This document shows positions 4,645-63,536 of a stretch of 64,000 bases of DNA, piece after piece. Origin of the DNA: Sminthopsis crassicaudata. Its lineage: Eukaryota. The number at the start of each line of letters is the position of its first letter. Position 1 is the stretch's first letter. Below the pieces are notes generated by a model. It was not told the DNA's origin. It saw only the letters and a program-made list of their open reading frames with translations, and made no database searches. The DNA lies in contig NC_133617.1 in the NCBI RefSeq assembly GCF_048593235.1, positions 478,372,958-478,436,957 on the forward strand, in the 5' to 3' direction. The position numbers were made by a program, and so were the translations under genes.

Positions 4645-5105
4645 TTTTTTTATTTTGTCCAGTTGTCCATGTAAAGATAGTTTTCAACATTTGCTTTTTT
4701 AAAATTTTGAGTTCCATTTTTTCTTTTTTTCTTCTTTCCCTCCTCCCCAAGACAGCAAGCAATCTGATATAGATTAAACATGTGCAATTCTTTTAAATTT
4801 ATTTCCATTTTGTCATGTTGTGTAAGAAAAATCAGACCAAAAGGGAAAAAGAACACAAGAAAGAAAAAAAAAACAAGCAAAAAAGGTGAAAATATTTTGC
4901 TGAGATACATATTTAGTCTTTAGTTCTTTCTAGCATTTTCTATCCCAAATCTTTTGAAATTCCCTTGAATCACCCCATTGTTAAGAGCCAAGTCCATCAC
5001 AATTGCTCATCACATACTCTTTTTGTTACTGTGTACAATGTTCTCTTGATTCTCATTTCCCTCAGCATCAGTTCATGTATATCTTCCAAGCTTTTCAGAA
5101 ATCAT
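4645..5105 (-). mobile_element. L1 3' end fragment
   Basis: T-rich left end, aagatagttttcaacatt, agacagcaagcaatctgata, gttactgtgtacaatgttctc...tcagcatcagttcatgt; same motifs recur in other copies. Confidence 0.85.
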
Positions 5106-6599
5106 TCATAAGAAATATCTTTTTTTAAGAGGTGGCTCTTGAATGAAAATTTGAAGGGGCTCCAAGAATTGGAAGTGAGGAAGGAAGGCATTACATAACA
5201 TAGTGAAAAAGCTTGGACTTGGTATGGAGTTAGGAGATGGAATGTTTTGTAAGGATGATGGTAACTAAATCTATTTAGTAAGTTATATGGAGGAGACCAG
5301 TGTGAAAATCAGCTCAGTGGCTGAAATCGGATTGTGCTAGGTTTTAAATGACAGACGAATTATTATTTTATTCTAGAACAACAGGGAATTATTGAAGTTT
5401 CTGGAACAAGGATGTGATAGCAGTATAGGACATGGATTGTAAAAGAACATAATATAATATAAAATAATATAATGAAGGAAGACTAATTAGGAGCAAATCC
5501 AGTCTTCACTTTGGCTCTATGGATCAAATCATTCTCAAAGTAGGCACAAGACTAGAATTTAATCTGATGGTTAATAAATTGGCAGTCATAACTGGGGTAA
5601 GGGGTGCAGGAAAAGGAAACTCTTCTCCTCACTCCCACCCCACGTTTTAGTATGAAGCCAAAATCTGTTCTCTATACTTGTGGCTACTGATGACTAAGTG
5701 GTGAACCGATTCACTAAATCATAGGATGCCAGGCTAACATTTTATTTCCTGAAGGTGAAGTTATTGGCACCTGCCCCTGAAGAAACTGCAGAGACTCAGC
5801 TTTGCTTCATATAATTGATCTCCTAGGTCATAATTCTGGCTTCAAGAACTGGACTAAAAAGATACAAAGAACAACAACCATTTTATTTTAGCCAGATCTA
5901 AGTTTGCTAAACTCCTTTGGTCAGATGATAATATCCCAGTGTTGACAGTTCATTGGTTCTTCCGTACCATTCCCAACACCCCCACTCTTGCTGAGCCTGA
6001 ACTTATATTCACTCATCTCCAATTTCTTCTTGAAGAAGAGTGATGAAGAAGCTCTTCCGAGAAACCTCAGGCGTTGAACGAACATTACTGGGACCTAATG
6101 GCTCAGGAAAGAAGGAGATGGGGTGAGCCCATTTTCCTCTCTGGGCTTCAGTTTCCTCATCTCCAAAAGGAAAGGTTTGGACTGATAGCCTTCGAAGGTC
6201 CTTCCAGCTTTAGAGATATTGATCCTGTATTTTATGATCTCTTTGGGGCTGATTTTCCTTATCTCTAACTTAAGGGGGGGATGGGTGGGACGAGACAATC
6301 TTTCAGATCCTTTCTGTCTCACAGCCCTTCCCGTCCAGTTACACAGCCATTCTGGCCTGTCTCCTCTCTACCACCTGGCAGAGTATCGCTGAAATCTTCC
6401 CTTCTGGGGAGATTTCCCTGGGTAGCTCCAACTTCAGGCAACCATTGGACTCTCCACCATCCCTGTTACTAGGATCTATTTGGAGATTGGGTCTTGGTCT
6501 TACTTCTGAGCCTGAGGGAGGCACAAAACCACTTCTTTTCATTTATTTCCCCTTCCTTTTTCTTCCTAAACCTTCTATGGCCCTCCCCCAGCCCCCCTT

Positions 6600-7928
6600 T
6601 GAAACCGTTAGCCGCTGTGGGGTCCCATCCATCCTCTCCCAAGCTCCCCTCTCCCCCCCCCCCCAAGCGGAGCCGAGGGGCCTGCGAGCGGGCCTGTCTT
6701 GATTGTGTCGATGGGAGATGATTTTCAAGGTGAAATTTCTAGTTCAGTTGAGTCACTTTCATTCAAGGCAACGAGCCAAATGTCACCCCCGCCCTGCGCC
6801 GCACTCGATGCGCCCGCCGCTCTCCCATTGCATTTAAATTTACTCCACTTTTCCTCTCTGACACCTGTTTAAATCAATATCTTCCTCTCCAGGTCGTGGG
6901 GAGAATGTGCTCGGGCCCTCCACACAGCGCTTCTCAAATCCACTAAAATCAACACAATAATTGAAATATTTTCAAGCTGATTACACCGCAGCCCGAGGCT
7001 AGGCTGGTTGCTAAGGGTAAGCTCCCCGGTTGCTAGGGGGAGTAAATCATCTTGCATTATTTGATTTTTGTTATAGATATGAAACCGCTACTCCCTCGAT
7101 TAAATGTCTCTCAGTCTAACACCTATGGGACCTGGGGAAAGAGAAAAGAAAAGCGGTAACCTTGACCCTGTCAAATAAATATCTCTAACTTTTCCTGTCC
7201 TCCGGCTTCCCAGCCAAACCTGTCTGCGGATTTTTTTCCCTTCTTCTTCTTCCCTTAACCTGACTTTAAATAACAAAGCTGTGGGGACGGGCAAGATGAA
7301 GAGAGGGAAAAACTGTCTGTTCTATTAAAGGACCTCTCGGCTGGGCTAAACACTCTCTATTTACTCCAAACACAGCATGATGGGGAAGCTACAAGGATCT
7401 AATAGCCTTGAAGATGTAGAATCTCCGCAATTACGGTTCCCTTCAAGCCGGCGGCTCGCGGGGGCCCCAGCCCGGCTCGATGCGGAGCGCTTGGCCGGGG
7501 CTGCCTTCCGCAAGAGCCCGGGCTCTCTGCGCCGGTCCGGCCGCAGCCCCGCCACCACCGCGGGCGCCGCTGCCGCCGCCTAGGACGGCCCGGTGCATTA
7601 TTAATAGGAGCTCCGGCGGCCGGGGGAGGTGGCATGTGACACGGACACCCGGCAGCCTGGGCTGTTTCGCGGGGTCTCAGCATGCTCCTGCTTCCCCCTT
7701 TATCTCCACTCCCGCCCACCGGCTCTCCAAAAATTAATTCTGCCCAATAATACTGTCATTGTCCGACTGTCTGAGGCCAGAGGCTAGCTGTCCTGGCCTC
7801 CCGCTGGCCGGGGGCTCCGCACCTTTCCTCTGGAAACAAACAAACAAGCTTGTGGCTGAGGTGGAGGGAGAGGTGAGGCGGTCTCAGTGGAGACCTGGCC
7901 TCGTCCTAATGGAGTCACACAATGGTGG
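6600..7928. promoter_or_regulatory. CpG island with enhancer-like blocks
   Basis: Sharp rise in GC and CpG (6600-6830, 7430-7930) against a CpG-poor background; repeat-free; TGACA/TGTCA and PBX-HOX-like motifs; ends in an N gap. Confidence 0.75.
6893..7016 (+). other. Candidate non-coding exon
   Basis: Acceptor cttcctctccAG (AG 6891-6892) and donor AGG|GTAAGC (GT 7017-7018); 124 nt; stop codons in all three frames. Motif evidence only. Confidence 0.3.
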
Positions 7929-8087
7929 NNNNNNNNNNNNNNNNNNNNNNNNNNNNNNNNNNNNNNNNNNNNNNNNNNNNNNNNNNNNNNNNNNNNNNNN
8001 NNNNNNNNNNNNNNNNNNNNNNNNNNNNNNNNNNNNNNNNNNNNNNNNNNNNNNNNNNNNNNNNNNNNNNNNNNNNNNNNNNNNNNN
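7929..8087. other. Assembly gap (159 N)
   Basis: Run of n at the edge of the CpG island. Confidence 0.99.
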
Positions 8088-8256
8088 GTAGGCACAAAGG
8101 AGTCAGCATAGGATAGCATGTAGAGCTATCAGAAACTCAAGAATGTTTCCCAGTTCCTTTATTTTGGGTTGTTTTGGGAGGGTTGGGTTGATTTATTTCA
8201 CCCAAACACTTAGGCTAGGTTGGTTTTGCATTCAGTTTTTTTTTTTTTTTTTTTTT

Positions 8257-8360
8257 GGGGGGGGAGGCAAAGTTTAAGTGACTTGCCCAGGATCACACAG
8301 CTAGTAAATACTGAGTCCTGATTTGAATTCAGATCCACCTGATTCCAGGGCCGGAGCTCT
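8257..8360 (-). mobile_element. Short CORE-SINE (WSINE1-like)
   Basis: After a T-run: aagtgacttgcccaggatcacacagctag...atttgaattcagatcc. Confidence 0.8.
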
Positions 8361-8500
8361 ATCATCCAGTTATTAAAAGGGAACATCTTTCTTATGCCAG
8401 AGGATTAAGGATTTGGAGGGAGAAGGGACTTAAGAGGCCATCTAGCCTGTTTTTTATTTTACAGATTGGGAAATAAATTCAGGGAGATTATGACTAACCA

Positions 8501-9444
8501 ATGGCTGAAGATGAAGGAAGCCTTTGCTGGCCCAAAATTTAGAGCAGGTAGGGACTGAGATGTCTTAGATTTACCTCAGGGCTTTAGGAATGGAACCTTC
8601 CCCCCCTCCATTCCCCCTCAGAGATGGAATTGAGAGACCTGTTCTGATGGCACACCCAGGATACTTTGCACTACACCGTGAAGTCTGTGGCACCTATTTC
8701 CTGAAGAGCACATTGATCCTGAATTTAGAGGACTTCAGATCTTACCACTGATGCTAGCTATCTGTGCACTTCTGTACAAGTCACTGAGTCTCAGTTTCTT
8801 AATATGTAAAGTAAGGGCCTGATACTAGGCCTCCAACTCTAAATTTATAATTTCATGTTGTAAAGAGGATATTCTTATCCAATGATGGGACTTAAAGCCA
8901 AGTTGTCCCATTCAAAATAAAAGCGTTCTGGAGCACACACACACACACACACACATGTTAAGGATCTGGGTCCCTTGATTGATGTCCCCTCTCTTTTCAT
9001 AGGAGGGGACCAGAAAAGTAAAGTTATTCTTAATAGCCACACATCAGGACTGAGAGAGCCCTCACTACATTCAGCCCTCACTATATTCAGGCATTTTCTT
9101 AGCCACACATCCCACCTACTCTCTATCCAGAGGTGCCACTTGTTGGGTAGGTTGGATCAAAGCCCAGGAAACTGTTTTTCAACAATTAAGTGGCCCTCAA
9201 TTTTAGAGGAACCATTAAAGTTCCTTCAGTCCAGTAGATCAGACCCATCTTAGTGCTTTCGTCTGAATCTTTCCTTCCATGCTTTGTATCATTAGGGAGA
9301 CCACCTTCCCAAAGTGAAGTTTAAACCATGGCTGAAGATGAAAGAAGCCTTTGCTGGCCCAAAACTTAGAGCAGGTAGGGACTAAGGTCTCTTAGATTCA
9401 CCTCAGGGAGATGGCTTTTAGGAATGGACCCTTCCTCTCCCCCC
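8501..9444 (+). repeat. Dispersed direct repeat pair (~8501-8606 and ~9328-9444)
   Basis: atggctgaagatgaa(g/a)gaagcctttgctggcccaaaa...; 6 mismatches in the first 81 nt. Confidence 0.95.
8933..8955. repeat. (CA)n microsatellite
   Basis: Read directly. Confidence 0.95.
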
Positions 9445-9599
9445 AAAACTGCTTGCTCTCCTCTGTTTCTTGGTCACTGGCAGCAATGGGACCTTGTCTT
9501 CTTAGCTTCAGTAAGCCTTTTGCCTGGGGCCAAAGAGCCCCTCCTTATACCATCTCTCCCTCTCCCCCCCTCCCCCCCAGTATATTGTAGGCACAAGAG

Positions 9600-10000
9600 C
9601 CTTTGGAGAAGTTTGAGGTTTTTTTTTTTTAATGGGCAGAAATATCTGCCTGTTAAACTTTAACTACAACTGTACCCAAAGCCCGTCTGTCTAGCAGCAG
9701 GTGGGCTAGTGAGAGGCCCGGTCCTGCTGGGATATAACCAGCTGTTCCCATGAATGAATCTCAAGTAAATTAACAAACACCACACAAACCTGTCAATTGA
9801 ATCATTCTTGATTACTGTAAACGCTGGGTGATCCGGGCGGGGGCCTTCCTCCCCAGCCCCTCCTGCTCGGAGTAAGCTTCTTTGTGTCCAGGGGAGCTCC
9901 CACTATCTCTCACACCCCGTACAGCCAGGCCTTGCAGCTGCATTCCTCAGAGCCGTGTTTTAGATGGCAAGTGGTCGCCGGGTTCTAATCCGTCCCACGT
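9600..10000. promoter_or_regulatory. Candidate enhancer block
   Basis: Repeat-free, CpG-retaining; CTGTCA 9790-9795, CAGGTG, CAGCTG and acaaaca motifs. Confidence 0.4.
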
Positions 10001-10432
10001 CCCATTGCCAGTCCATTCTTTCATAGGCGCCATTTCTTAGCCTGTATCCTCTCTGCTTGAAGACTTTTAGGGTTCCCCATTTTCTACAGAATCAAGCTTA
10101 GCTTGGCATTCAAGCTCCCCTAGATTACCCATGCAACTTTCATTTTTATTTAGCACAGTTCCTGGAACATAGTAAGTGCCTAATGAATGCTTGTTGAGAT
10201 GGCTTCTATTGCCTTGGCTCACATGATTCTCCCAATCCTTTAAGTCAGCTCTTCTTCCATTATACCTTCCCTCACTGTGCCTGAAACCTGAAGCATGAAT
10301 TATCTAACTAGAACTAACACTTTGTGGAGTATTTTGTGTGTCAGTTTTTTATTTTGTCACGATTGTTGGCATAGTGGAATTGAGTGCCAGACTTGGAGTC
10401 AAGAAGACCCGAGTTCCAGTCCTACCTTAGAC

Positions 10433-10990
10433 ACTTCCTACATATGCCCTTGCCTAGTTATGTGTTTTTTTTTAATAGCCTCAATTTTTTTAATAGGGAT
10501 AATAGCACTTACTATATATAGTGATATAAGGACTTCCTACACATGACCACACTAGTCATGTTTATGTTCTCTTAGCCTCAGTTTTTTTTTTCATCTGTAA
10601 AATGGGGATAATAATAACCCTTACTATATAGTGATATAAGGATTTCCTACATATTAGTGATATAAAGACTTTCTACATATCACCATGCTTAGTCATTTTT
10701 TCTTAGCCTCAGTTTTTTTCATCTGCAAAATGGGCATAATAACACTACATAGTGATATAAGGACTTCCTACATATCACCATGCTTACTCATGTTTGTTTT
10801 TTCTTAGCCTCAGTTTTTTTCATCTGTAAAATGGGGATAATAGCATTTATTATATAGTGGTATAAGAACTTCCTATACTTTCTACATATGATCACTTCTA
10901 GACATTTATTTTTTCTTAGCCTGAGTTTTTTTTTTCATCTGCAAAATGGGGAAAATAATAGCACTTACTGCATAGTGATATAAAGATCAC
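10433..10990 (+). repeat. Tandem array of ~5 MIR-core-derived units (~97-131 bp)
   Basis: Anchor tagcct(c/g)a at ~10476, 10573, 10704, 10805 and 10917; most units continue tttttcatctg(t/c)aaaatggg and all carry tagtg(a/g)tataa. Confidence 0.9.
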
Positions 10991-11249
10991 TCTATAAAGC
11001 AACTTGCAAATCTTAAAACACTACATAAATATTATCATCATCATCATTAACTTTTTGAAGATATGGACCATAATGCATTTATTCTATGCTGTCATCAACA
11101 CAATGGTGTGTATTTAATAATCAGTCAATTAGTAGTTATTTTGAATGAATGAAAAAAAATACCCTTTTCTTATATCTATAAAATAAACCAGGTTGGGAAT
11201 CCATAGAGATTGAAAGACACTTTTAAAGAGCTGGTGGCAGTAAGGAAAA

Positions 11250-11500
11250 GGGAAGGGAATAAGCATTTATTGAGTACCTACTATGTACCAATCACTGTTT
11301 CAGGCACTTTACAAATATCATCTCATTTGATTTTCACTGCAACTCTGCAAGCTAGATGCTGACATTGTTGCTATTTTATAGATGAGGCAATTGAAGTTAA
11401 ATGACTTGCCTAGGATTGCTTAGGAAAGTGCCTAAGGTCGCCATTTGAACTCGAATTTTTCTGATTCCAGGTCAAGTGTTCCAGCCACTGTACCAGCTAG
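11250..11500 (-). mobile_element. CORE-SINE (MIR-like)
   Basis: aataagcatttattgagtacc...ttttatagatgagg...ttgaactc. Confidence 0.75.
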
Positions 11501-12554
11501 CTGCTTCTACATATAATATAGCCTAGTATATAAAAAGGGCTGGCTGGAGAATGTAGGAAACTTGGCCTCTGGCTAGACCAGAATTAGTGAACAACTGACT
11601 ATGTGATTTTGTGGAAATCACTTTTCTGAATTCTGTTGTTTCCAGCCATATAAGAAGAAATCAAGAATTTTTCCTCCCTCCTTAGAGTGACATTAGGAAG
11701 ACCAATGTGGTAAATATCATATAGTGCTAAGTTTCTTGGAAGAATGCATTTAGGTGAGTAGATGGTGGAACTACCTCTTTACGTAGCATTCTCTTCCTTA
11801 TTTTTGTCTCCTACTTGGGAAAACCCCACCTGCACTGTCTGGGTCTCCTCTCAGACCCCACCACTTCCTTGCAGAGGCTGCCAGTTACCGGTTTGGCTTC
11901 CCCTGGACCTCCTGGAACTGCTTCCATTTCAATTTACCGTTGACTTGAGAACTTGGACAGCTGGGAGAGGCTGGGTAAGGCAGATACTCTGCTGGAAGAA
12001 GCCAGATGGGACAGTATTTGGGGGGAGAACAATGCAACATGCTTTAAAAACTCTGCTATGGCACTAGGACAGCATTACACAGATAGCAGGCATTTAATAC
12101 ATAACTTGCTGATTATGTTAGGCTTTTACATTGAAAATGTCAAAGTTTGTCACAACAGTTCTACCTCATAATCATCTTTATCAGACAGAGATGAACTCCA
12201 TTTTGCAGAAGGGTAAACTGAGACCCAGAGAAATTAAATGAATTGACCAAGATCACAAGCATGATGAAATGGAGATTAGAAGTCAGGAATCAACAGATTT
12301 ACAGGATAGTGTTCTTTCCTAAAGCATAGGTCTGATCATCTTTCTCCCCTGATGAAGACATTTCAGTGAATACCTCTTGCCTCTATAACAAAAAAATAAA
12401 TAAACACCTCTATTTGGCATACAAAATCCTCTGCAATTTGAATCGGACCTGTCAGAATAGACTGATTTCCCTCATACATTCTATCAATCAATCAATCAAG
12501 CAAGCATTTATTAAGTATGCTTAGTTTCCATAGACTATCACCCTGGCTTTCTTT

Positions 12555-13191
12555 TTTTTTTTTTTTAATTTTTTTTATTATATATATATATATATTTTTA
12601 TAATATTATCCCTTGTATTCATTTTTACAAATTACCCCCCCTCCCTCTATTCCCTCCCCCCGATGACAGGCAATCCCATACATTTTACATGTGTTACAAT
12701 ATAGTCTAGGTACAATACATGTGTGTGAATATCATTTTCTTGTTGCACAATAAACATTAGAATCCGAAGGTACATGTAACCTGGGCAGACAGATATTAGT
12801 GCTAACAATTTACATTCACTTCCCAGTGTTTCTTCTCTGGGTGTAGCTACCTCTGTCCATCATTGATCAACTGGAAGTGAGTTGGATCTTCTTTATGTTG
12901 AAGATTTCCACTTCCATCAGAATACATCCTCATACAGTATTGTTGTTGAAGTATACAGTGATCTTCTGGTTCTGCTCATTTCACTCAGCATCAGTTGATT
13001 TAAGTCTCTCCAGGCCTCTCTGCATTCCTCCTGCTGGTCATTTCTTACAGAGCAATAATATTCCATAACCTTCATATACCACAATTTACCCAACCATTCT
13101 CCAACTGATGGACATCCATTCATCTTCCAGTTTCTAGCTACAACAAAAAGAGCTGCCACAAACATTTTGGCACATATATGACTCTTTCCGC
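12555..13191 (-). mobile_element. Young 5'-truncated L1 with target-site duplication
   Basis: Poly-T at 12552; intact ORF2 C-terminal frame (CAKMFVAALFVVARNWKMNGCPSVGEWLGKLWYM...ILYEDVF); TSD CACCCTGGCTTTCTTT at 12539-12554 and 13192-13207; target TCTTT/AA resembles the L1 endonuclease consensus. Confidence 0.95.
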
Positions 13192-14282
13192 CACCCTGGC
13201 TTTCTTTAAAGTTCAGATCAAATGCCATCCCCTGCTCCTCCTTGATACTCTGCCCCTTTTGATACCCAGTTGCTTGTTCTCTCCATATTTCTCAAATTAC
13301 TTTGCATATGATTTGTATTTACTTTTCTGTGAATGTATTTTTCCTCCAGTAGAAAATAAGATCCTTGAAGACAAGAACTATTGAAGGCCATTTCTAGACA
13401 TTGTTTAAGATATAGAAGGTGCATAAATGTTTGCAGAATTGAATTAAGTTGAATTCCCTTAGACCATATTGATTTTCATTAGGGAGAAATCTTGGGTCCA
13501 ACCAGGCTCTCTGGTGATGGAAGCATCAGTAAAGGCTGAAGCTTACATAATCCAACTCTGGGCAGAATCTTTTAGAATCAAGGATTTCTAACCATCAATG
13601 GATACCAAGAAGACTGGATAGTTAGTAACAGTAATAAAAGTATTTAATTAAATTAATAGGGATGAGAAACTGATGCTGAGAGAGGAAGGGAACAAGGGTT
13701 CTAATAAAAAATAGAGAAAATAAAGGAACAGAAATGGGGAGAGTAGTATTTGTGTTGGGGATGAATGAATAAGAATGAACAGGTCTACTACTTATGAGTA
13801 TAAGTAAACCATTTATAATCACCCACTTACCTGCTTCTTCCCCTTTGATTCATTTATCTTTTTAATAAATCTATATTGAGTATCTCCTATTCAAATAAGC
13901 TTGAGCTATACCGTGAGATGAGCACAAAATAACAGGAAAATGAAGAATATTCCTTATTTCTCTTTTTTTCCCTTTCCCCCCTTTTTGAAGTTTGAAGCAA
14001 TGTATTAGAATAGGAATGTGTTAAGATCTGGAGAGGAATAAGTTTGAGTTCTTTTCTCTCTCTCCTTCTGAAGTCCTGGAAGCATAGACTTAAAAGAATC
14101 ATAGATTTAGAGCTGGAGGAGACCTTAGAGACTTTTTAGAAATAAGGAAAATAAGGCACATTAAAATCAAGTGACTTATCCAAAATCATATAGCTAGTAA
14201 AGGAGAAAAAGGAGAAACTAGAAGGTGACAAAGGGAAGAAGGAGGAAGAATCAGAAAAAAGAACTCAGACCAATTTCCAGAA

Positions 14283-14480
14283 CAGAGATTGTTAACTTGG
14301 GGTCTCTGGGTTTTTTACATACTATTTTGATAACTATACTTCAATAGAATTGGTTTCCTTCATAATCCTATGTATTGTATTTCATACATATAAAAATGTT
14401 TCTGAGGAGTCCATGGGCTTCATCATACTGTCATAGAGGTCCATCTCACACAGATATACATACACACAATTAAAAAGTCC
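14283..14480. mobile_element. hAT/MITE-like remnant
   Basis: cagagattgttaacttggggtc...ttcaatagaattggtttcctt..., similar to the 1752 copy. Confidence 0.6.
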
Positions 14481-14644
14481 TACGTCGCAAACCTTCGTAC
14501 ACCTTAGATTTTATAAGCATATAAATCAAAGATTGCGGGGGGGGGGGGAAGAAAGAATAGGATTTTGTCCAGGAAAACAAGAAAGCTAGAGGATAAAAAA
14601 AGTGGATGGGAGGAATCTCCTCTTTACGATGGATAGGACACTAT

Positions 14645-14656
<12 letters not shown>

Positions 14657-14712
<56 letters not shown>
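14657..14712. repeat. (TA)n microsatellite
   Basis: Read directly. Confidence 0.98.
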
Positions 14713-14715
<3 letters not shown>

Positions 14716-16854
14716 AGTGAAAATGGAGAAACTAAAAGGAAAAGCTTGTCAAAGTTACTATGCAAAATCAGAAAGAAGTGATGGAAAGGAAGCAGAGAGT
14801 GAAAGTAGGAAAAAAGAGCAAAAGATAAATTAAGAGGACCTAAATGGGAAAAGAAAAGAGCTTGTGGCAGAGGTAGTAGAGGGAGAGGTTGGGTGATAGA
14901 AAAGGAAAAGACATAAGCTGCTATATTTATAGGTATTATAATAACTCACTTTTATAAAACACTTTAAGGTTTGTGTATTTTGTGTACATACCCCTCCCTC
15001 CAGCCAGTTGTTAAACATTTACCACTGTACTCCTGCTTCCAGCTCACTATTCTGTGGTTCTTTGATTCTATAGGAAAAATCCCATAACACATTTTTAAAA
15101 GTTTAATTTAAATTAATAACATTTTCTCATCACTTTCTTAAACCTAACTAATCAACAAAACAGTAAATCAAGCACTCTAGAATTTGTTGATTTTTTTGAG
15201 ATCTAACTGCACATGCTGAAAATTTAACACTCACTTCTCCAAAGTTAGTAAGAGCTAGTTCTAGGACACCCTTAGAGATGGAAAAAAATATCTGTCTACA
15301 GTTAAATATCAAGGTATTTAAGTAATTAAGTAAGTAAAATCTGGTTCTATGTTCTTTCCATGGGGTAGTCCTCTCCCCCATTTTGTGGCTCAATTTCCCC
15401 ACTGAGAAAAATAATAATAATAAAAATAATAAAATAAAATATTATTCTTATTTATTTCAAAGTGTCAAAGAAGTAATAGTCAAATGTTAGAGTGTTTAGA
15501 GTCTTGATAGGAAAGATGCTTTGGAAATTCAATATCAGAATGCATCATAATTAGGTAATGGTTGAACAATTTGGTGGATCTCATTCAGCAATGTTCTGGT
15601 AAAAGTTTAACAACTGCCTCTCCTTTAAAAATGTACTCATGATTTTGAGGAACTGTAGGAGTTGCTTTTACACACTCTTACATTATATAAAAGGTTTAGA
15701 AAGTGGATACAAGAAGGTCACAGAAGGGATAGAGTTGGAAGCAGTTAATATGGTTGGGCTGGACATGAAGCAAAGTCTTGTCAGCATAGTTGAGTAAAGA
15801 TGGCATGGGGATAAGGGTGGGTGATCACAGGGCAAGTTCAAATTAACTAATTTTTCTTAGGTATTACTTGTTCCTTCATGACTGCAAATCTGTTCTAGTC
15901 CTCTATTCAGATAGTAGGACTCAGCCCTCCACCCTTCAAACCCATCAGTTTTGATTTGATTTGAGCACCTTCGTTTTTCTCAGGGCTCAATTTAGGGCAC
16001 CTGGAATGTTAGAGCACAAAACAAAAACAAAGCAAAGAGGAAACCATATGTCATCCTAACTGGGAGAGAAGTGCCAGACATTGTCCCTCAAGAGGCCCAG
16101 GAAACAGAAGGGCAAGGGGAAGAAAAAACTCGGAAAGAAAAGAGGAGATCAGAAATTTTAATAGGATGGAAATTGAAACCACAAACTGACATAAATGCCA
16201 TCAGTTTGCTGAATCTCAAACTGAATCAAAATGTATATAATTTACTTTTTGTTTCTTTCTTTTCACCCTGAGCCACACAATGAATCAATGACATTTTAAA
16301 AGTTGTCTCTTAAGTACATAGAAACAATGTAGAGTAATAGAGTTCTGGGCTTGAAATGAGGAAGACATGAATTCAAATACTGCCTCATACTTACTGATTT
16401 ACTAATTTAGTGATTCTAGGAAAGTTACATAATTTCCAAATGTCTCAGGCTTATGTGCCCTCAGTCTTATTTACTAAATTTCTGCTGATGGTGGAGGGAA
16501 TTTGTATACTGAGAACTTCCCTTATTGATGAAATCAAAGAGCTTTCCCATGTTATTGTTATTTAACAAAATCCTACTGAATCATTAAAAATGGAAACTTA
16601 AGAGAATACATTTTATAAAACCATTGAACCAGTACCTCAAAATATTCTCCAGTCAGAAAAGCTTTTTTTTCCCTTATAATCGCTTCTCCCTATGGCTTCT
16701 TAGTCTAGTAGAGATGAAAAGATTCTCTTCCAGGGGGCACTCTGTCTAAATGTCTCTCCAAACTCCTCCTGACCATCCTCCTGTCTCCAGGGGCCTAAAA
16801 ATTGTTTCAAAGTACCAATAGTCAAACCCATAGAAAGGGAATAAAAAGGGAAAG

Positions 16855-23440: not shown

Positions 23441-24480
23441 GAGGTAGGGGTGAGCTCTTCACTGTCTGCCATTTAGCCAGCAGCACTCCTGGGCAGCGCG
23501 GGGGTGGAGGGAGCCACAGGACACCTCCGTCTCCTCTATTTACAAACTAGCTGCCTTCAGCAGCCAGCCTGTTTAAGCACTTCATTCCCATTCAGAAGGG
23601 CCATCTGCTGCCTTTTGCTGTAAGTCTCCCTGAAAACCCCAGCCTTGACAAGCTAGAGATATGTCAGTGCAGTTATCAGCAGAAAGCAACATCTGCCATC
23701 CCTGACACCTAGTATTGTAGCCCATTTAATATGTCCCCCTCCTCCCTTTAACTGCAGACAACAGCTCCCTATATTATATTTTCCCACTCAATTAGCACTA
23801 TCATCCTGCTGAAATAGAAGCCAATTTACCTTTAATGACATCATTGTTAGGAAAGTGGCGGTGCCCGGTCCTCGGCTGTCACTGGATTGCGGGAGGCAGG
23901 GCTGTCTCTCTCTACTAGCCCTGACAGCGGATGGGGAGCGGCCGCAGCCTATCGGAGGCNNNNNNNNNNNNNNNNNNNNNNNNNNNNNNNNNNNNNNNNN
24001 NNNNNNNNNNNNNNNNNNNNNNNNNNNNNNNNNNNNNNNNNNNNNNNNNNNNNNNNNNNNNNNNNNNNNNNNNNNNNNNNNNNNNNNNNNNNNNNNNNNN
24101 NNNNNNNNNNNNNNNNNNNNNNNNNNNNNNNNNNNNNNNCGGCCCACTGAGCAGCCAAAACGAGCTGATGGATCCATTAGGCCGCTTCGAATGCTTTTCC
24201 CCCTCTCCCTTCATTCCTGACTGACACTGTAAATCTCAGCCAATTTCAGGCCCTAATCATCATTACAAACCCCCCTCCACTGTTCATTTGTGACGCCGGG
24301 CCATTCTAATCTGGGGGTGGGGGAGAGGATCCCCCTCCCCACAAGGGGGTCGGAGCTCTGGGGAGCCCGAACAACCTACAGCGAGAGGAGAACGGCGAGC
24401 TATTTGGGTACTGCCGGGGTGGGGAGGGGGCCCTGCTTCAAGTGGCTCCCAGGGAGGTGATGAGGGGAGCCACAGAGCCT
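23440..24480. promoter_or_regulatory. CpG island with enhancer-like blocks (interrupted by gap)
   Basis: CpG-rich flanks; 4 TGACA/TGTCA and 2 CATCTG in 23600-23840; TGATGGAT 24166 and TGACTGACAC 24218. Confidence 0.65.
23960..24139. other. Assembly gap (180 N)
   Basis: Run of n inside a CpG island. Confidence 0.99.
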
Positions 24481-33990: not shown

Positions 33991-34132
33991 NNNNNNNNNN
34001 NNNNNNNNNNNNNNNNNNNNNNNNNNNNNNNNNNNNNNNNNNNNNNNNNNNNNNNNNNNNNNNNNNNNNNNNNNNNNNNNNNNNNNNNNNNNNNNNNNNN
34101 NNNNNNNNNNNNNNNNNNNNNNNNNNNNNNNN
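33991..34132. other. Assembly gap (142 N)
   Basis: Run of n following an L1 3' fragment (~33722-33990, minus). Confidence 0.99.
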
Positions 34133-42377: not shown

Positions 42378-42603
42378 NNNNNNNNNNNNNNNNNNNNNNN
42401 NNNNNNNNNNNNNNNNNNNNNNNNNNNNNNNNNNNNNNNNNNNNNNNNNNNNNNNNNNNNNNNNNNNNNNNNNNNNNNNNNNNNNNNNNNNNNNNNNNNN
42501 NNNNNNNNNNNNNNNNNNNNNNNNNNNNNNNNNNNNNNNNNNNNNNNNNNNNNNNNNNNNNNNNNNNNNNNNNNNNNNNNNNNNNNNNNNNNNNNNNNNN
42601 NNN
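42378..42603. other. Assembly gap (226 N)
   Basis: Run of n. Confidence 0.99.
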
Positions 42604-44147
42604 TTCTTTTTTTTTAAGTCAATTTTTCTTTTTCCATGCATCTTCTTCATTAACATCCAATAATTCTTTTTTTGTTTGAATACATATTATCCTTTTTCCT
42701 TGAGGCTTTTTTTGTAGCAATTTTCACATTGTTATCTTCTCAGTTTGTGTTTTGGTCTTTTTAGCGATCATAGCAACCTTTTATGATCAAATTCTTTTTG
42801 TTGTTATTTGCTCATTTTCCTGCCTATTTCTTGACTAAATTTTATATTAAAATTAGGTTTTGTTCATCTGGGAGTGGTGAGACACTGTCCTATGATTCAT
42901 ACTTTTTTTCATGTTGCTATTTTCAGGACTAATTCTAGGGGTCTGACTTATTTGGTACTACCAAAGTAGTATGATCCTAGGAGAGGCATGGTCACTACTC
43001 TGCTGCTCTATGCTCCGGTCTTTACCTAGGAAGAACCCCTGGAACCCTGTAGCCACAAATTCTCTCACTCTTCTTTGTTTTGGACCTGTGACCAGGGCTT
43101 CTGATACTTTTTGATCAATTTCCAGCACCAGCACACCTTTTCATCCTGGAACTATGACCCAGAACTGTGTTTGGGCTATAGAGTTGCCAAATAGTGCCAG
43201 CTATAATTTCTTTCTGACCATTTACCTGATCCTTCCTTACTATCTCTTGTCTGAGAGTGCCCAAAACCGATGCGGCTACTGGGGGAACTGTTCCTGCAGC
43301 TATGTGGGCTCCAAAGAGACTTCTGTGAACCTCTCAAGTTATCTTAGTCCAGAAAAATGTTTTCTCTTGATCACTTGTTGGCTTTGCCAACAAATTTCAT
43401 TTGAAGTGTTATTTTAAAATTGTTTGGAGGGGAATGTTGGGAGAGTTAAGCTGAATGGTTGCTACTAATCTGCCATCTTGTCTCCACCCTTTCTCCCTTA
43501 TCTGAATTTTCTCCAGCTAACTGCCTAATTTCTAACCCAGTTCTCCTCCCAGGATACCATATTGCTCAGCCGGGAAGTAGAAAACACATAAAAAAAAGAA
43601 AGCCCAATGTCATCATCACCAATATCTACTATTGATGTATCCACTGGCTACATAGCACTGGATTAGCCATCACTTCTTATTTTAAAGGAATACTATTTCT
43701 TTTTCTAAAGCTTGTAATTTAAGGGGAAAGCAAGACTTAAGGACATTTGTTTAACTGTGACTGGAGGCCTGTTTATAATTGGGTAAAATAGAGGCAGACT
43801 TATTTATTAGAGAAATCATTGATTACAGAAGGGCCAATGCTAACTCTCTTCATATAGGTTGCTCTCATTGGCACTGAGGTATCTTTTCCCAGACCGGAGG
43901 TGCTATCTGATTTAATTTGTATACATTTTTGCAAGTAAGGAAGAACCTTGAAACTGTCCTTAGTATGTATATCCCTAAGAATTTACCCAGATTTTGTTTG
44001 CAAAGGCTATCCAAATCTACTATTTCTGCTCTAATCTTTTCCTCAAAGGCTATTTTGTTTGGGTCTTTCATTTTCCTCTCTTCTCTCTTGTTCCTAGGAG
44101 TCCTACAAAATAAATTGGAAGATTCTTCCCTACATTTCTTTAGGAAC

Positions 44148-44174
44148 ATCCATCCATCCATCCATCCATTCATC
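44148..44174. repeat. (CATC)n microsatellite
   Basis: Read directly. Confidence 0.93.
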
Positions 44175-44828
44175 CAGTGGGAACCTGGAGCATCTCTTAG
44201 CTTCTCAGGTGATGGAAGTTCTTGAGATTTGACCATTATTGCCATTTCAAGGGGACCAGTGACAATTTCTTACTCTCTTTAAGGAAATTTAAACTTAGCG
44301 GGGCTTCATATCCAACATTTAATATTACCTTTGGGTATAGGGAAAGTAGAACTCCTCTGTAAATAGGATGGAACTCTATACATATGTGACCTTGAGCATT
44401 CCTTTCTGGACCTGTTTCTTTAATTATAAAATGAGAAATTTGGAATAATATGACCCCAAAAGTCCTTTCTATATCAAATTCCTATTATCTTATAATCAGG
44501 AAAATAATCATATCCATATTTCTATTCCTATAAAGGAGCTGTCAATCATTTACTCAGCCACTGTCTTTCTGATCAAAACACCTCCCTGGCTACCACTCCC
44601 AAATATATATTTCCTTTCTCTACTAGAATGTAAGCTTCTTGAGGTTGAGAATTATCTTGGCTTTTTCTATTTGTAATCCTAACATTTAACATAGTGTTTG
44701 GCTCATAGTAAATATTTAATAAATGCCTTTTCATTCATTTTTCTCCTCTGCTTTGGTCTAACAGCCTCTGCACAGAGATCTATCTATTTTCATCTGTAGA
44801 AACAAAAGGATTTGCTGAGAGCCACAGA

Positions 44829-44829
<1 letters not shown>

Positions 44830-44858
<29 letters not shown>
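44830..44858. repeat. (GT)n microsatellite
   Basis: Read directly. Confidence 0.97.
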
Positions 44859-44862
<4 letters not shown>

Positions 44863-45039
44863 GTAGACATATATTTTGAGCAGACCAGGATCATCCAGAG
44901 TACTGCCTATGGCATTTCCAGAAGGCAAGATCTCTGTGCAAGGTCCAAGGTGAAAATGTATGTGACTCTATATGCAGCCATTAGAAATAGGATGTAGCTA
45001 GCAACAGGGATAGTGGGAAGGTGCATCGTATATAAGCAA

Positions 45040-45460
45040 GTGATTTTCCTCTCAGTTACAATGTGCAAGCTTGGAGCCCAAGAGGGACCTTTAGTGCATT
45101 TAACATGACCAAATTAACCCCCATAGACAGGCAAACACTTGTTTACACAGCACAGGAAAGCAAAGATGGAAATTTATGATGTCGCTAAAAGAACTTCTCG
45201 CCTAGTGTTCAGAGAAGAAGGGGAAAGAGATAACAATATTTCCCATTGAAAGGAAGTGGAAAAGCTCTTAACAAATCAATACCCTTATTTAGTCAATAAA
45301 CCCACAAAACATCTCCTTGAGGGTATAAACATGGAGAAAATTCACTGCTTGCAAGCAGATAATCTCCAAGCCGGTCCTCTACAGGATCTTGTCAAGCTGT
45401 AGTCGATGAGAACAGTTGGTTTGTGCGTGAACATGCATTAGAGGTGTCCGTGGATAAGTA
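45040..45460. promoter_or_regulatory. Candidate FOX/ONECUT/GATA enhancer
   Basis: GCAAACA 45131, TGTTTAC 45140, ATAAACA 45325, AAATCAATA 45273, AGATAA 45357; repeat-free. Confidence 0.4.
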
Positions 45461-45866
45461 CTAAGACTGCCCAGCAGGACATTTAGAAGTAAAGACAGGG
45501 AGCATTTCAGCATGGGCACATCAAGAGAGAAAATATGGTGAAACAGAGAAAAGACTGGATTTGGAGTCAGGAAGATCTAGATTCACATTCATTTTTCCCC
45601 TACTTTCAACCCTAGGCAAATTTTTGTGCCTCAATTTCCTCATCAACAGGATAACAGAGTTGGATTTGCTGGCTTCTAAAATCTCCTCTAGTTATGAATG
45701 TTTACCTCATCAATGCCTGAGAAAGTCCTATGTGGTCATATTTATGATCATTTAAAGGAACTTGATGGTAGATTTTGATTATAGGATGCATTCAGCACCC
45801 TAATGAGAATAGGATTGTAGAATTATTTTTCTGAAACTGTTACCCTTCTCTTTAGCTTTCTTTTTC

Positions 45867-46423
45867 TTTATGGAAAAAGAAACTGAGACTAAGAGAAGTC
45901 AAATATCTTTCCTATATTCATAGAGCTCATGAAGCCTTCCTGCCTAGGTAACTAAACAAGAGTGGATAGAGAAGCCAGAGTCAAGAAGATGTGGGTTCAA
46001 ATTCAGCCTCAGATACTTATCATGGTATCCTGGGCAAGTCATGTAACTTAAATTTCTTGCTCTGTAAGAATGGGATAATATTTGCAAGGTCCCTGGAACA
46101 TACATAATAGGCACCTTATAAACGCTTATTCCCTTCCTGACCTAGACTAGATGATCCTGGACAATAGGAGAGTTTCTAGAAAATGGGAAAGAAAAGATAT
46201 TATCCAAGATATTATCCCATTCTTACAGAGCAAGAAATTTAAGTTACATGACTTGCCCAGGATACCATGATAAGTATCTGAGGCTGAATTTGAACCCACA
46301 TCTTCTTGACTCTGGCTTCTCTATCCACTCTTGTTTAGTTACCTAGGCAGGAAGGCTTCATGAGCTCTATGAATATAGGAAAGATATTTGACTTCTCTTA
46401 GTCTCAGTTTCTTTTTCCATAAA
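45867..46423. repeat. Perfect 215-bp inverted repeat with 127-bp spacer
   Basis: 46209-46423 is the exact reverse complement of 45867-46081 (compared base by base). Confidence 0.98.
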
Positions 46424-46443
46424 ACTAGGAGTTGAGACTAGGG

Positions 46444-46621
46444 CAGGGATTCTTATTCGGAGGGTTCTTGAACTTTAAAAAATATTTTAATGACTATGTT
46501 TTGGTATAATTGATTTCCTTACAATTCTGTAATATTTTAAAATATTATTCTAAGGAGAGATTCATAGGTTTTTATTAATTTTCAAAAGGATTCATGATGC
46601 AAAAACATTTCAGGATTCCTG
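46444..46621. mobile_element. hAT/MITE-like remnant
   Basis: cagggattcttattc...tataattgatttcctt...ggattcctg; related copies near 38238-38380 and 56245-56500. Confidence 0.55.
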
Positions 46622-49194
46622 GATAAGATCCTCCCGGCTCTAACATTGTAGGATTTCGTGAAAGAAATCTAGAGGGAAAAGAGAAAGCAGGGGACCTGAT
46701 TTATAAAAGATGCTGAGATTTTTCTAACAAACCTCTGTCCAGATTGAGGAGAAGTTGTAGCTGGTGCTTTGGAAGAGAAATATGCAAATGCTGTTTTGCA
46801 GAAGACAGTGGAAAGAAAATCAGGACCCTAGCTAGTATTTGGTAGTGTGAGTTGGCTCAGAGCTGTCTGGATGAACCTGGGTATTGGAAATAGTTTAAAC
46901 ACTAGTATAACTGACTAAGCAAGTAGCAGATTGTAACTGGCTCATTAGGGAGCACAGATACATGTATGCATCATCTGGAAAATACTCTTAAAAGGAGCTG
47001 GGAGGCAGTTCTCAAAGCTTTGGTCAGTGAAGATTTAAAAAGCAAGGAAAAGCTTTGAGGTGAACTGCAATGTGTCCTTGTCCTGATTCCCTTGCTCTGG
47101 CCTTCCTCAGTCCCAGGGATAGTTTCCTGAACAAGAATCATTGATCTCCCAATTTGGGGACATCCTGCAGTTCCCAAATATCTGTGGCTTAAGGTCAGAT
47201 GATGATAATAATAGTAATAATGGTAATAACAATAGTGATAAAATGATGATGATGATAATGATGATAGTATTTACATCATGGTTTAAGGCTTGCAAAAACC
47301 ATTTACATGTATGTATTATCTTATTTGATCCTCACAACACCGATGTCAAATAGGTGCTATTATTATACTCATTTTACAGTAATTAAGTGATTTATTCGGG
47401 GTCCAACAGTTAGTAATCCTATATGAAACACTTTTTCTTGACTCTAAGTCCCAACTTTTATCATTGTGAATTTTGGGAAAAGAGGAGACATTCCTTCTAG
47501 GACTGGATTCTGACTTTTATGTTTCTCTTAGGCTTCGATGGGACTCAAAAGTTGACTGTCTTGGAATCCTGTAGTGGATAGAGTTCTAACACTTAAATTG
47601 AGCACTTTGTTTGGATCCTGATCCTCTCACTTATTACCTGTATATCTTCTGCCAGGTCACCAAGACTGGACCTCAGTTTCCTAATCTGCAAAATTAAAAA
47701 AGTTGAATGAAATGATCCCTAAATCTCTTGCAACTACAGATCCCTTGAATCCATATTTTCCTTCTTTCTCTCCATTTCTTGTTCCCAGTCTCCTATTATT
47801 CAGGAAGCAGTACAGTATGGTGGAATGAGAAGTGACTTTAGTGCTACAAGAACTCAGGTTCAAATCTCAGCTGTGCTTATTACTTCTGTGACTTTGGGCA
47901 CATCAACTAACTTCTCTATGTCTCATTTTCTATATTCCTAAGATCAGGGAAGAGGATTTTGGCTCAGTGTAAGAAAGAACTTTGTAGCTACTATAGCCAT
48001 TCAATAATAGAATGATTGCCTTCAGAAGTAGTGGACTCCTCATCATTGGAAGTGTTCAAAAATAGGCTCAATGAATGTCAATGTTTTAGAGGGTATTCCT
48101 GAATTAGGTGACTTGGCTTGTAAGGGACTTTATAATTCTTTGATTTTATGATTCTGAGGTTCTATGATTATTCCATACAGTTAGTTTCTTTCTAGCTTTA
48201 TGACCAGCATTTGCTGGGCTCTTCTTCCCTTTCTCTCTCCTTGAATACTCATGATCTCAATCTTTTCCTTCTCTTTGGCTCTAGGAAGTATTAATTCTTT
48301 TAGTTGACTTTCTTGATCTCTTTTATCTTTTGATCTCATTAGCATCATTTAAGCAATATCTTATTCACTTCACAAAAGTCACAGTGAAAATGAAAACCAT
48401 CTGATTGGTGTACAAATTTGTCCTCTGACCAACCCAGGATGTCAGTGAAAGAAATAAAAAGTGCCCTCCCCCTCCTAGGTCATCACAGTAAATATCCATT
48501 TAAAATAAACCTAGAGATCAGATTTAAGTTTTTTTCCCCTAAAGCAGTGGTCCCCAAAAGGCCACTGTACCAGCTGATTAGAAATGATATCAGTCTCTTC
48601 CCACTCCAGGCTCCCACCAGTCAGTACCAGGTGTGCAGATTTGATAAGAATGACCAGTATGGAATATATTTAGCCCCAGGCCTTAGGTCTGGTTGATCTA
48701 GGTCAGTTTCTGGAGTTACTATATTAGTTTTTCCTGGGAATTGGTTCAGAGGACCCTGTCCTAGGTTCCAGGGCTAAATCTTCGCTGATCACTGAATCCC
48801 AACTAGAGGCAACAAGCTTCTAAGGCTTTCCTGGCCCCTAAGCCTGTTTGACTCCCTGGGCTCAGAGATCAGTACAGTCCATTCAATTACCCATTCCTTT
48901 CCTTATGTCTTTTCTACCACAACTGGATGTCCCGTTCTGGTATCTACTTCCTCTTTCTCTTTATTCCTTGTCTCTGTGCACTCCAAGTCATAGAATTTAA
49001 GAATATATTTATAAGGGAAGAGAAAATATATGAAACTAGATATATTAAACTAATGAAAGATCATAAGAAATACATGAATGAATGAATAAAACATTTATTA
49101 AGGATTTAAACTTGTTCAAGGCATTGTGCTAAGTACTAGGGATTCTAATGGAAAAAAATGTCACAATCTCTGCCCTCAATGAACTTACATTCTT

Positions 49195-55819: not shown

Positions 55820-56035
55820 TTTTTTTTTTTTGTTGTTGTTGTTGTTCAGCATTCAGCATACAGAAATATATTTAGGAGAATTTTACACATTTAATCTATA
55901 TCAGATTGCTTGCTGTCTTAGGGAGGGGGCAGTGGAGAGGAAAGGGCAAAAAATCTGGAGCACAAGGTTTTGCAAAGATGAATGTTGAAAACTATCTTTG
56001 CATGTATGTGTAAAAAAAATAACATTAAAAAAAAG
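55820..56035 (+). mobile_element. L1 extreme 3' end, plus strand (the only one seen in this orientation)
   Basis: tttaatctatatcagattgcttgctgtct...aatgttgaaaactatctttgcatgt then A-run; reverse complement of the 4645-type end. Confidence 0.85.
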
Positions 56036-59214: not shown

Positions 59215-59690
59215 TTTCTTTCTTTTTTCAATAGCATTTAATTTTTCCAAATACATATAAAGGTAATTTTCAACATATATTTGGTAAAACTTGATGTTGT
59301 AAATTTTTCTCCCTCCATCCATTGCTTCCCCCCTTCCCAAGACAGCAAGCAATCTGATAAAGGCTAAATATGTGCAATCCTTTTACACATATTTAAAAGG
59401 AAAAAAATAACAAAAAAGTGAAAATGCTGTTTTATCCATATTCAGTTTCCATAGTTCTTTCTCTAGATGTGATTGACATTTTCCATCCCAAGTCTATTGG
59501 GATTGTCTTTGGGGGCAGCTAGATGATACAGTGAGGAGAGCACTCAGGAGGACCTGAGTTCAAAATTGCCCTCCGACACTTAGTATTTACTAGTTGTGTG
59601 GCCCCAGACAAGTCATTGAACCCCAATTGCCTCACACACAATTGCCTTGAATGCAATGAATCATTGCATTGTACAATAATTCTTTCAATA
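59215..59690 (-). mobile_element. L1 3' fragment interrupted by a short SINE (~59512-59630, plus strand)
   Basis: L1 motifs (agacagcaagcaatctgata; catcccaagtctattgg) flank ggggcagctagatg...aaccccaattgcctc. Confidence 0.8.
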
Positions 59691-61719: not shown

Positions 61720-62774
61720 CCAAGCTACTTAATGCAATAGAATGAGTCTGCCTGAGTCATACCCAATATCTCAGATAATAAATGACTTCACTTTGTTAAC
61801 ATTTCTCAAACAGGACTATTTGAAAAATCTTCCTTTTTGTTTTGGGCTATCAGTGTCTGGGTTCCTACTGGGATTAAAAAAAAAAAGATAAATTAGCATG
61901 AAAAAAGGTAAAGATTATTTCACATTGGTTGTTATGAACTGAAGTCAGGAAGCGCTGAGTTCGAATCTTGCCTCAGATACTTTACTAGCACTGTGACCTT
62001 GAGTAAAATAACTAGTCTCTCTCCAGTCTGAGTTTCCCATGAGGTAGGCTGACATGATGGCCTCCAAGATCCCCTCTAGCTTTAAACTTGTGATCGTATG
62101 AGCCTAGGGATATTGACTCAATAAGCAACGATTAAACACCTATGGTGTGCCACACTGAGAGGCAGTCAAGAGAGGGAAAAGGCAGCATCTCTGCCTTTGA
62201 AGAGCAGATTCTTGGGATAATAAAACCAGTAAATGGAAAATCTGTTATTTTCTTTTTTTTTTCTTTCTTTCTTTTTTTCCCTGAGGCTGGGGTTAAGTGA
62301 CTTGTCCAAGGTCATACAGCTAGGAAGTGTTAAGTGTCTGAGGTTAAATTTGAACTCAGGTCCTCCTGACTCCAAACTTGGTGCTCCACCCACTGCGCCC
62401 CCTAGCCGCCATGCGCATGTGTGTCTATATACATACATACACGCTGCTATCTGTCCATGGGTACTTGCCCGCACACATTGTACGCATGCACCTAAAGATG
62501 CAGGAATATACACATACATGTCCCTGAGCACGTATACGTATCCTGGGTCTGCCGATTTCCAGACCAAGCCACTTAACACAATGGAAGGAAGAGGAGCTCG
62601 GGCAGATCCTGCTGGAGTCACACCCAGCGTCCCAAACGACTTAACGCCTCCACATCGTTAGCATTTATCAAATCGGGCTCTTCGGAAAGATTTCCTTTTT
62701 CCTCCGGACTAGCGGCGCCCGGGCTCCTAATGGGGCTAAAAATGACAAATTAGCATGAAGAGAGGTAAAGACTA
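61720..62774 (+). repeat. Diverged ~200-bp local duplication (61720-61917 and 62564-62774)
   Basis: Collinear blocks ccaagc(t/c)acttaa, gagtca(t/c)accca, ttccttttt, ggg(t/c)tccta, aaattagcatgaa, aggtaaaga(t/c)ta. Confidence 0.9.
62281..62410 (-). mobile_element. Short CORE-SINE (WSINE1-like)
   Basis: ggggttaagtgacttgtccaagg...tttgaactcaggtcctcctgactcc...cactgcgccccctagccgcc. Confidence 0.9.
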
Positions 62775-63536
62775 GGATACAAGCTCTATTTGCTCCACAC
62801 CTAAGATCTAATTACCCGTAGTAGTCCCCTAATTCCACGTAACACACCGCGGGGCCTGGAAGGCCCGGATGATAAATGCCTCAAATCCCCCAATATTCTC
62901 CTCTCTCCTTCACTCAGACGCAGCCTCCTTCCCCTTCTCCGAACGCAGAAATGATTTTTCTCTATCAAAATGTGCAATAANNNNNNNNNNNNNNNNNNNN
63001 NNNNNNNNNNNNNNNNNNNNNNNNNNNNNNNNNNNNNNNNNNNNNNNNNNNNNNNNNNNNNNNNNNNNNNNNNNNNNNNNNNNNNNNNNNNNNNNNNNNN
63101 NNNNNNNNNNNNNNNNNNNNNNNNNNNNNNNNNNNNNNNNNNNNNNNNNNNNNNNNNNNNNNTCCCTGACAGACTCCAGACGGGCAGCGGCTGCTCGGCG
63201 GCAATCTCTCGGAACTGTCACACTCTGTGATCGGCCCTTTTACAAACACAAACACTGCTGATTTCTTATCAAATGTAAAACCTGCACAGCTCTTTCTTAA
63301 ATGGTTACCACTAGCATGAAATTGACATTGTGAATCACATGTGACACTGGCTTGTCTGAGGTGTAATTGATCTGTGCTTAGGAAGGAGACCGCAGCCTTG
63401 CTTTCTCAGGGAGCCCCAATCACTAACGCTCTCCAGCACATCCCTGGCTTTGCACAATCTGCTCAGGACCCCGGCGATGGCAAATTGTGGTAAATGATAG
63501 AAAACTGTAAGGAAATGCCTGATTCGCCTAAGTTGT

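Follow-up and report, generated by a model that had tools for sequence, protein, structure and literature searches.

A very young 215-bp perfect inverted repeat built from old SINE sequence in Sminthopsis crassicaudata, most likely left by template switching

A pair of perfectly complementary 215-nt arms in the genome of Sminthopsis crassicaudata is, on balance, best read as a real, lineage-specific and very young germline rearrangement, most likely the result of a replication error with two template switches. We observed the structure itself, its presence in independent reads and its ancestral state in related genomes. The locus is of a mutation type that is already known, the short-range template-switch mutation or, equivalently, the micro-inversion with breakpoint duplication, and it provides a cleanly polarised case in which a decayed repeat became a long, perfect inverted repeat in one mutational step. 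A relative shows the ancestral layout, both junctions can be read to the base and the ancestral allele may persist in the species.

Results

The window, by which we mean the whole 64-kb stretch of DNA (64,000 nucleotides) that was analysed, is AT-rich (38% GC) and CpG-poor (CpG observed/expected 0.15). A repeat search together with direct string comparison bore out the perfect 215-bp inverted repeat that a first-pass annotation had placed at 45867-46423: the arms, 45867-46081 and 46209-46423, are exact reverse complements of each other (215 nt, 100%) and are separated by a spacer of 127 nt. By string comparison their complementarity stops dead on both sides, where not one more base pairs. Perfect arms of this length are far beyond chance, because the best other inverted pair with its members at most 5 kb apart in the whole window is only 82 nt long at 80% identity; there is no second long perfect inverted repeat in the 64 kb. 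The parts of the structure and the evidence for each are collected in Table 1.

Table 1. Parts of the inverted repeat and its junctions, in window coordinates
Feature	Position	Strand	Evidence
Mini-palindrome at junction 1, 10 bp	45857-45882		45857-45866 pairs with 45873-45882 around a 6-nt loop; read directly from the sequence
Ancestral left flank, last 8 nt (TTTTCTTT)	45862-45869	+	Its reverse complement is 46188-46195; flank piece of relative B ends at 45869
Junction 1 microhomology TTT	45867-45869		Flank alignment of relative B reaches 45869; perfect arm begins at 45867
Left arm, new inverted copy of right arm	45867-46081	+	100% over 215 nt; absent between flank and spacer in relative B
Native part of spacer, inverted relative to the ancestral arrangement	46082-46187	+	Contig of relative B (X13) has 46075-46187 on the strand opposite to the left flank
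Inverted copy of the left flank's last 8 nt	46188-46195	+	Reverse complement of 45862-45869
12-bp tandem duplication AAGATATTATCC x2 across junction 2	46194-46217	+	TRF: period 12, 2.0 copies, 100%
Junction 2 filler, 13 nt (GATATTATCCAAG)	46196-46208	+	Identical in X2 contig 46052-46238, with 0 other letters
Right arm, original copy in ancestral orientation	46209-46423	+	Contig of relative C (X14) contiguous over 46280-47191
Start of right flank, continuing the MIR-like fragment of the right arm	46424-46442	+	Weak HSPs to 46438-46442; contiguity in relative C

Each arm is an identical composite of two different repeat fragments, and the earlier description of the arms as old, degraded SINE sequence is supported both by copies elsewhere in the window and by the depth of public contigs. 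The other in-window copies of the arm sequence reach only 64-81% identity. Among public contigs aligned to the region at 85% identity or more, the bins that include 45978-46020 and its mirror image had a summed depth of roughly 3,200-15,000, compared with roughly 14-65 in the flanks, and the loose ends of the contigs piled on the arm core share a consensus typical of the head of a SINE. Because of this depth and these shared loose ends, we conclude that the arms include the conserved core of an interspersed repeat of very high copy number, of which the copy here is old and degraded. The repeat is probably MIR/CORE-SINE, judging by the MIR consensus.

The junctions of the two arms are of two kinds. 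The outer end of the left arm and the inner end of the right arm cut repeat fragments abruptly, and the other two junctions continue them; the outer junction of the left arm and the inner junction of the right arm are new, and the left arm's junction with the spacer and the right arm's with the right flank are native. The boundary between left arm and spacer (46081/46082) is native because a SINE copy at 11251-11327 of the window aligns straight across it (46069-46137, 74%, E 8e-10), in agreement with the first reading that the SINE of the left arm runs on into the spacer; the first 56 nt or so of the native spacer are the tail of the SINE that starts in the left arm. The boundary between right arm and right flank is native because a contig of relative C (X14) runs unbroken from 46280 to 47191, across 46423/46424. 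This contiguity is direct evidence for the statement that the MIR core of the right arm continues into 46424-46440, for which the copies within the window provide only weak HSPs, reaching 46438-46442 at E about 1e-3.

The ancestral arrangement was found in a second relative. The contig of relative B (X13) extends from 44870 to 45869 and then passes at once to 46187, from which it descends to 46075 on the opposite strand before a further 92 letters; there are no letters between the flank and the inverted spacer, and the depth of the contig equals that of its neighbours. Relative B, then, has the left flank, the inverted spacer and the start of the right arm, and no left arm. This is the arrangement that had been predicted for a sister species, one arm only with the spacer reversed, and with the contiguity of arm and right flank in relative C it confirms the proposed ancestor of left flank, inverted spacer, right arm and right flank, the basis for the ancestral left junction being one contig from one relative. 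Relatives B and C diverge from this genome by about 5.1% and about 6.5%, respectively. That the present layout is the derived one is secure, since abrupt junctions stand against continuing ones and the arms are identical despite the 5-6% divergence between species. One contig of relative B has a joint of the "opposite strands" kind between 46275 and 46391, at a depth of 70, which may reflect multi-mapping of the SINE core.

Base-level inspection of the two new junctions adds three features to the first reading: 3 nt of microhomology, an overrun of the inverted copy by 8 nt into the left flank, and a filler of 13 nt that is partly templated. The microhomology is at junction 1, where the TTT is common to the native left flank and the inverted copy. 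At the far end of the spacer, the 8 nt that are the reverse complement of the left flank's end have a chance of about 4e-5 of arising at a fixed place, and it is because they mirror that end that we regard the inverted copy as having overrun the start of the segment by this length. Nine of the 13 letters of the junction 2 filler (ATATTATCC) are a second copy of the 9 nt with which the right arm begins, and this accounts for the 12-bp tandem repeat that had been noted at the inner junction and that TRF recovered. A 10-nt motif, TTTCTTTTTC, lies at the left flank's end (45857-45866) and recurs in direct orientation at 46408-46417, with 6 nt between it and the right arm's end; its presence at these two places accounts for the mini-palindrome at junction 1. 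The direct repeat may have favoured the switch, or the match may be due to chance in T-rich sequence.

Two runs from the same species, X1 and X2, contain the stretch, and they come from two samples and two studies. In the pieces listed X1 has no difference from the assembly, and it may be the assembly's source animal; X2 has a few differing sites and, as it also belongs to another sample and study, is independent of the assembly. The X2 contigs cover 44870-45896 (spanning the new outer junction of the left arm), 46052-46238, 46280-46423 and 46394-47194. When the assembled structure was simulated as a de Bruijn graph with k=31, the contig ends fell at 45896, 46052, 46238 and 46394, exactly as in X2, and each new junction is crossed by 30 nt in the X2 contigs, the maximum for a 31-mer graph inside a perfect repeat. 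The arm-only contig, 46280-46423, has a depth of 1.65x that of the flank in X1 and 1.73x in X2, i.e., two copies. Independent reads contain each of the new junctions, and the DNA of an independent animal has the structure.

How old is the rearrangement, and is it fixed? The 0 differences in 215 nt place the divergence of the arms below 1.4% (95%), or under about 0.27 of the split from relative B, and this figure, the absence of the left arm from relative B and signs of heterozygosity in X1 all agree with the claim that the copy was made very recently. The left-flank contig of X1 ends at 45869, not at 45896, and 45869 is the branch point that was simulated for a genome in which the ancestral allele is also present; X1 is, in our estimation, probably heterozygous and carries the ancestral allele as well. 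The spacer contig of X1 spans 46073-46181 compared with 46052-46195 in the heterozygote simulation, falling short by 21 nt at its left end and by 14 nt at its right, and the heterozygote model of X1 needs two further differences, near 46072 and 46182, on the second haplotype. The fuller proposition that living animals still segregate for the inverted duplication, with one sampled animal appearing homozygous and one heterozygous, we put forward as an outside chance.

If transcribed, the locus is predicted to fold into a 215-bp perfect stem of -434.6 kcal/mol (z -41), a result that follows trivially from the repeat. That this stem would be a dsRNA substrate for ADAR or Dicer if the locus is intronic, as the first-pass annotation had it, is a speculation. 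We found no Pfam match among 10 ORFs tested, which were chosen from those of at least 90 aa, and nothing in Rfam at the gathering threshold; no exon was found, and there was no Pfam or Rfam match to place the locus in a gene. None of the runs on record as RNA contains the stretch. Six runs guessed to be RNA (X7-X12) contain 12-46% of the sampled words of 45500-46800, and their contig totals of 0.6-1.6 Gb look like those of DNA libraries.

Discussion

A major question arising from these observations is what kind of event could duplicate an arm, invert the spacer and leave a filler at one join but not at the other. The mechanism that we infer is replicative. In the ancestor the left flank, which ended at 45869, led into the inverted spacer, and this into the right arm and its flank. 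A nascent strand would have come off its template at 45869 and, by way of the TTT/AAA microhomology, primed anew on the complementary strand, at the right arm's end. It would then have copied about 326 nt of the opposite strand, made up of the right arm, the spacer and the left flank's last 8 nt, with the backward copying passing the start of the segment and so giving the inverted flank copy, after which the strand would have returned to its original template downstream, at the start of the right arm, with a short and partly templated filler. The predicted product begins with the left flank and the new left arm; the inverted spacer follows, then the inverted copy of 8 nt of flank and the 13-nt filler, and last come the original right arm and the right flank. 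Against the ancestral allele this is a predicted gain of about 236 bp, with 342 nt in place of 106 nt.

This layout has a close counterpart in the short-range template switches described by Loytynoja and Goldman (2017, PMC5453318), in whose four-point model the type 3-1-4-2 yields two inverted repeats around an inverted spacer, and among which the return point lies downstream of the leaving point in all observed classes. At our locus point 3 is 45862, point 1 is 45869, point 4 is the ancestral boundary between spacer and arm and point 2 is the end of the arm; this is the order 3<1<4<2, with the return downstream of the point of leaving. As in those events, a forward fragment is followed by a reverse-complement copy (here 45867-46195) and by a second forward fragment (the right arm and right flank), and the direction of change is polarised with an outgroup, the ancestral state coming from related genomes (relatives B and C); like many human events, it is possibly still segregating. 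The switch and return are not clean, however: the plain four-point model has no filler or tandem repeat, whereas the return junction here has a 13-nt filler and a 12-bp repeat, and junction 2 needs extra switches or later slippage. In contrast to the human catalogue, the host is a marsupial and the substrate is old SINE debris. There is also a difference in size, as most catalogued events are tens of nt long and the longest short-range template-switch pattern in human haplotype assemblies is 318 bp (10.1101/2021.11.26.470150), whereas the copied fragment here, at about 326 nt, is at or above that human maximum. If our reading is true, the event is at or beyond the upper size limit of described short-range template switches, and an inverted copy at the top of the human short-range scale helps to link the scale of the "mutation cluster" to that of the structural variant. 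Larger rearrangements of the FoSTeS/MMBIR and DUP-TRP/INV-DUP kinds (PMC11293582) likewise switch template at microhomology, duplicate a segment in inverted form and carry short templated insertions where the pieces join, but they span kb to Mb and often arise on pre-existing inverted repeats, whereas the present event covers about 0.3 kb with no such repeat evident.

The two-switch event that the first-pass annotation had proposed stands as far as the layout goes, which fits type 3-1-4-2, but the same layout is equally produced by breakage. In the model of Ranz et al. (2007, PMC1885836), staggered single-strand breaks, fill-in of the overhangs and inverted rejoining by end joining give the same end product, and the model predicts an inverted segment with inverted duplications of ancestrally single-copy sequence at both ends; we found inverted duplications of 215 nt and 8 nt around the inverted 46082-46187. 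The length of 215 nt is within the range of Drosophila breakpoint duplications (46 bp to 1.9 kb, median 321 bp; PMC1885836), and both a 3-nt microhomology and a short filler are also typical of end joining. Those inversions are chromosome-scale, though, whereas here the uniquely inverted part is only 106 nt, the second duplication is 8 nt and the model would require the recapture of a loose fragment of about 330 bp. A 215-nt overhang also demands long unwinding, a difficulty raised by the authors of the model themselves (PMC1885836), and the templated 9-nt copy in the filler points to re-priming by a polymerase. None of these objections is decisive. We favour template switching over staggered breaks, considering it about twice as probable, because the event is small and local, because a free fragment of about 330 bp would need recapture and because the filler looks re-primed; an origin by breakage we regard as possible but unlikely.

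The other explanations fare far worse. The alternative named alongside the first reading was an assembly or sequencing artefact, in which a fold-back chimeric read or a mis-join made the second arm, and the perfect identity of the arms is just what such an artefact would yield. It is rejected because the X2 contigs, from another sample and another study, cross each of the new junctions and have just the ends that the structure predicts; the arm contig at about 1.7x flank depth in both samples, and the continuation of the assembly into native sequence on either side, also argue against it, leaving an artefact scarcely credible. The case is also a caution against taking every 100%-identical inverted duplication in this assembly for an artefact.

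Could the arms instead be an old inverted repeat, derived from two opposed SINE insertions or from an old duplication, that was kept identical by gene conversion while relative B lost one arm? Gene conversion between palindrome arms occurs in other systems, but the same two-fragment composite in both arms excludes independent insertion, and repeat fragments are cut abruptly at the outer junction of the left arm and the inner junction of the right. In addition, the layout of relative B brings back a single uninterrupted copy and accounts for the inverted 8 nt of flank, and a loss in relative B would also have had to invert the spacer precisely, all of which makes an old repeat highly improbable. 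Least probable of all is the insertion of a mobile element, foldback or MITE-like, whose terminal inverted repeats would be the 215-nt arms; long terminal inverted repeats around a short spacer do resemble foldback elements, but there is no target-site duplication (left ...CTTT, right ACTA...), the arm contig at about 1.7x flank depth represents two copies and not a family, and the sequence of arm and spacer is already at the locus in a relative, in rearranged order. We also worked through by hand a model of snap-back priming at a double-strand break, with joining by microhomology afterwards, and rejected it because it would keep the spacer in its ancestral orientation, contrary to what is observed.

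What might a newly formed hairpin of this length do? We consider it most likely a neutral scar, with no function indicated. The first-pass annotation had suggested that the repeat can extrude a cruciform, and for double-stranded DNA this is doubtful with a spacer of 127 nt, because in yeast a longer spacer between inverted Alu repeats led to a drop in recombination, the lengthening from 12 to 100 bp lowering it 300-fold (Lobachev et al. 2000, as cited in PMC10164571). A hairpin in single-stranded DNA is possible. The fragile inverted Alu pairs of that work, as they are described in PMC10164571, resemble the present arms in being SINE-derived, about 200-300 bp long and 100% identical, but with the 127-nt spacer found here we would not, on the cited results, expect strong fragility in double-stranded DNA.

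The birth of hairpins and miRNAs by template switching (PMC8794818, PMC10710096) likewise turns sequence without function into a perfect stem by a single mutational step. In those cases, however, the stem has the size of a miRNA and the locus is transcribed, whereas the present stem is 215 bp long with a 127-nt loop and is known from DNA. If the rearrangement is segregating, it would be a natural and genotypable newborn 215-bp perfect hairpin derived from junk SINE DNA, and if the locus were also transcribed, a source of hairpin RNA or endo-siRNA caught at its birth. The locus is in addition a possible population marker.

Elsewhere in the window there are two older inverted pairs with members 2.7-3.4 kb apart, 59544-59625 / 62288-62369 (82 nt, 80%) and 55864-55929 / 59329-59394 (66 nt, 80%), both probably opposed interspersed repeats. 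Five runs of N of 142-226 nt are present, at 7929-8087, 23960-24139, 33991-34132, 42378-42603 and 62981-63162. Microsatellites lie to either side of the inverted repeat, (CATC)7.5 at 44147-44176, (TG)15 at 44830-44859 and an ATA/ATG-rich array at 47198-47266, and public contigs break there.
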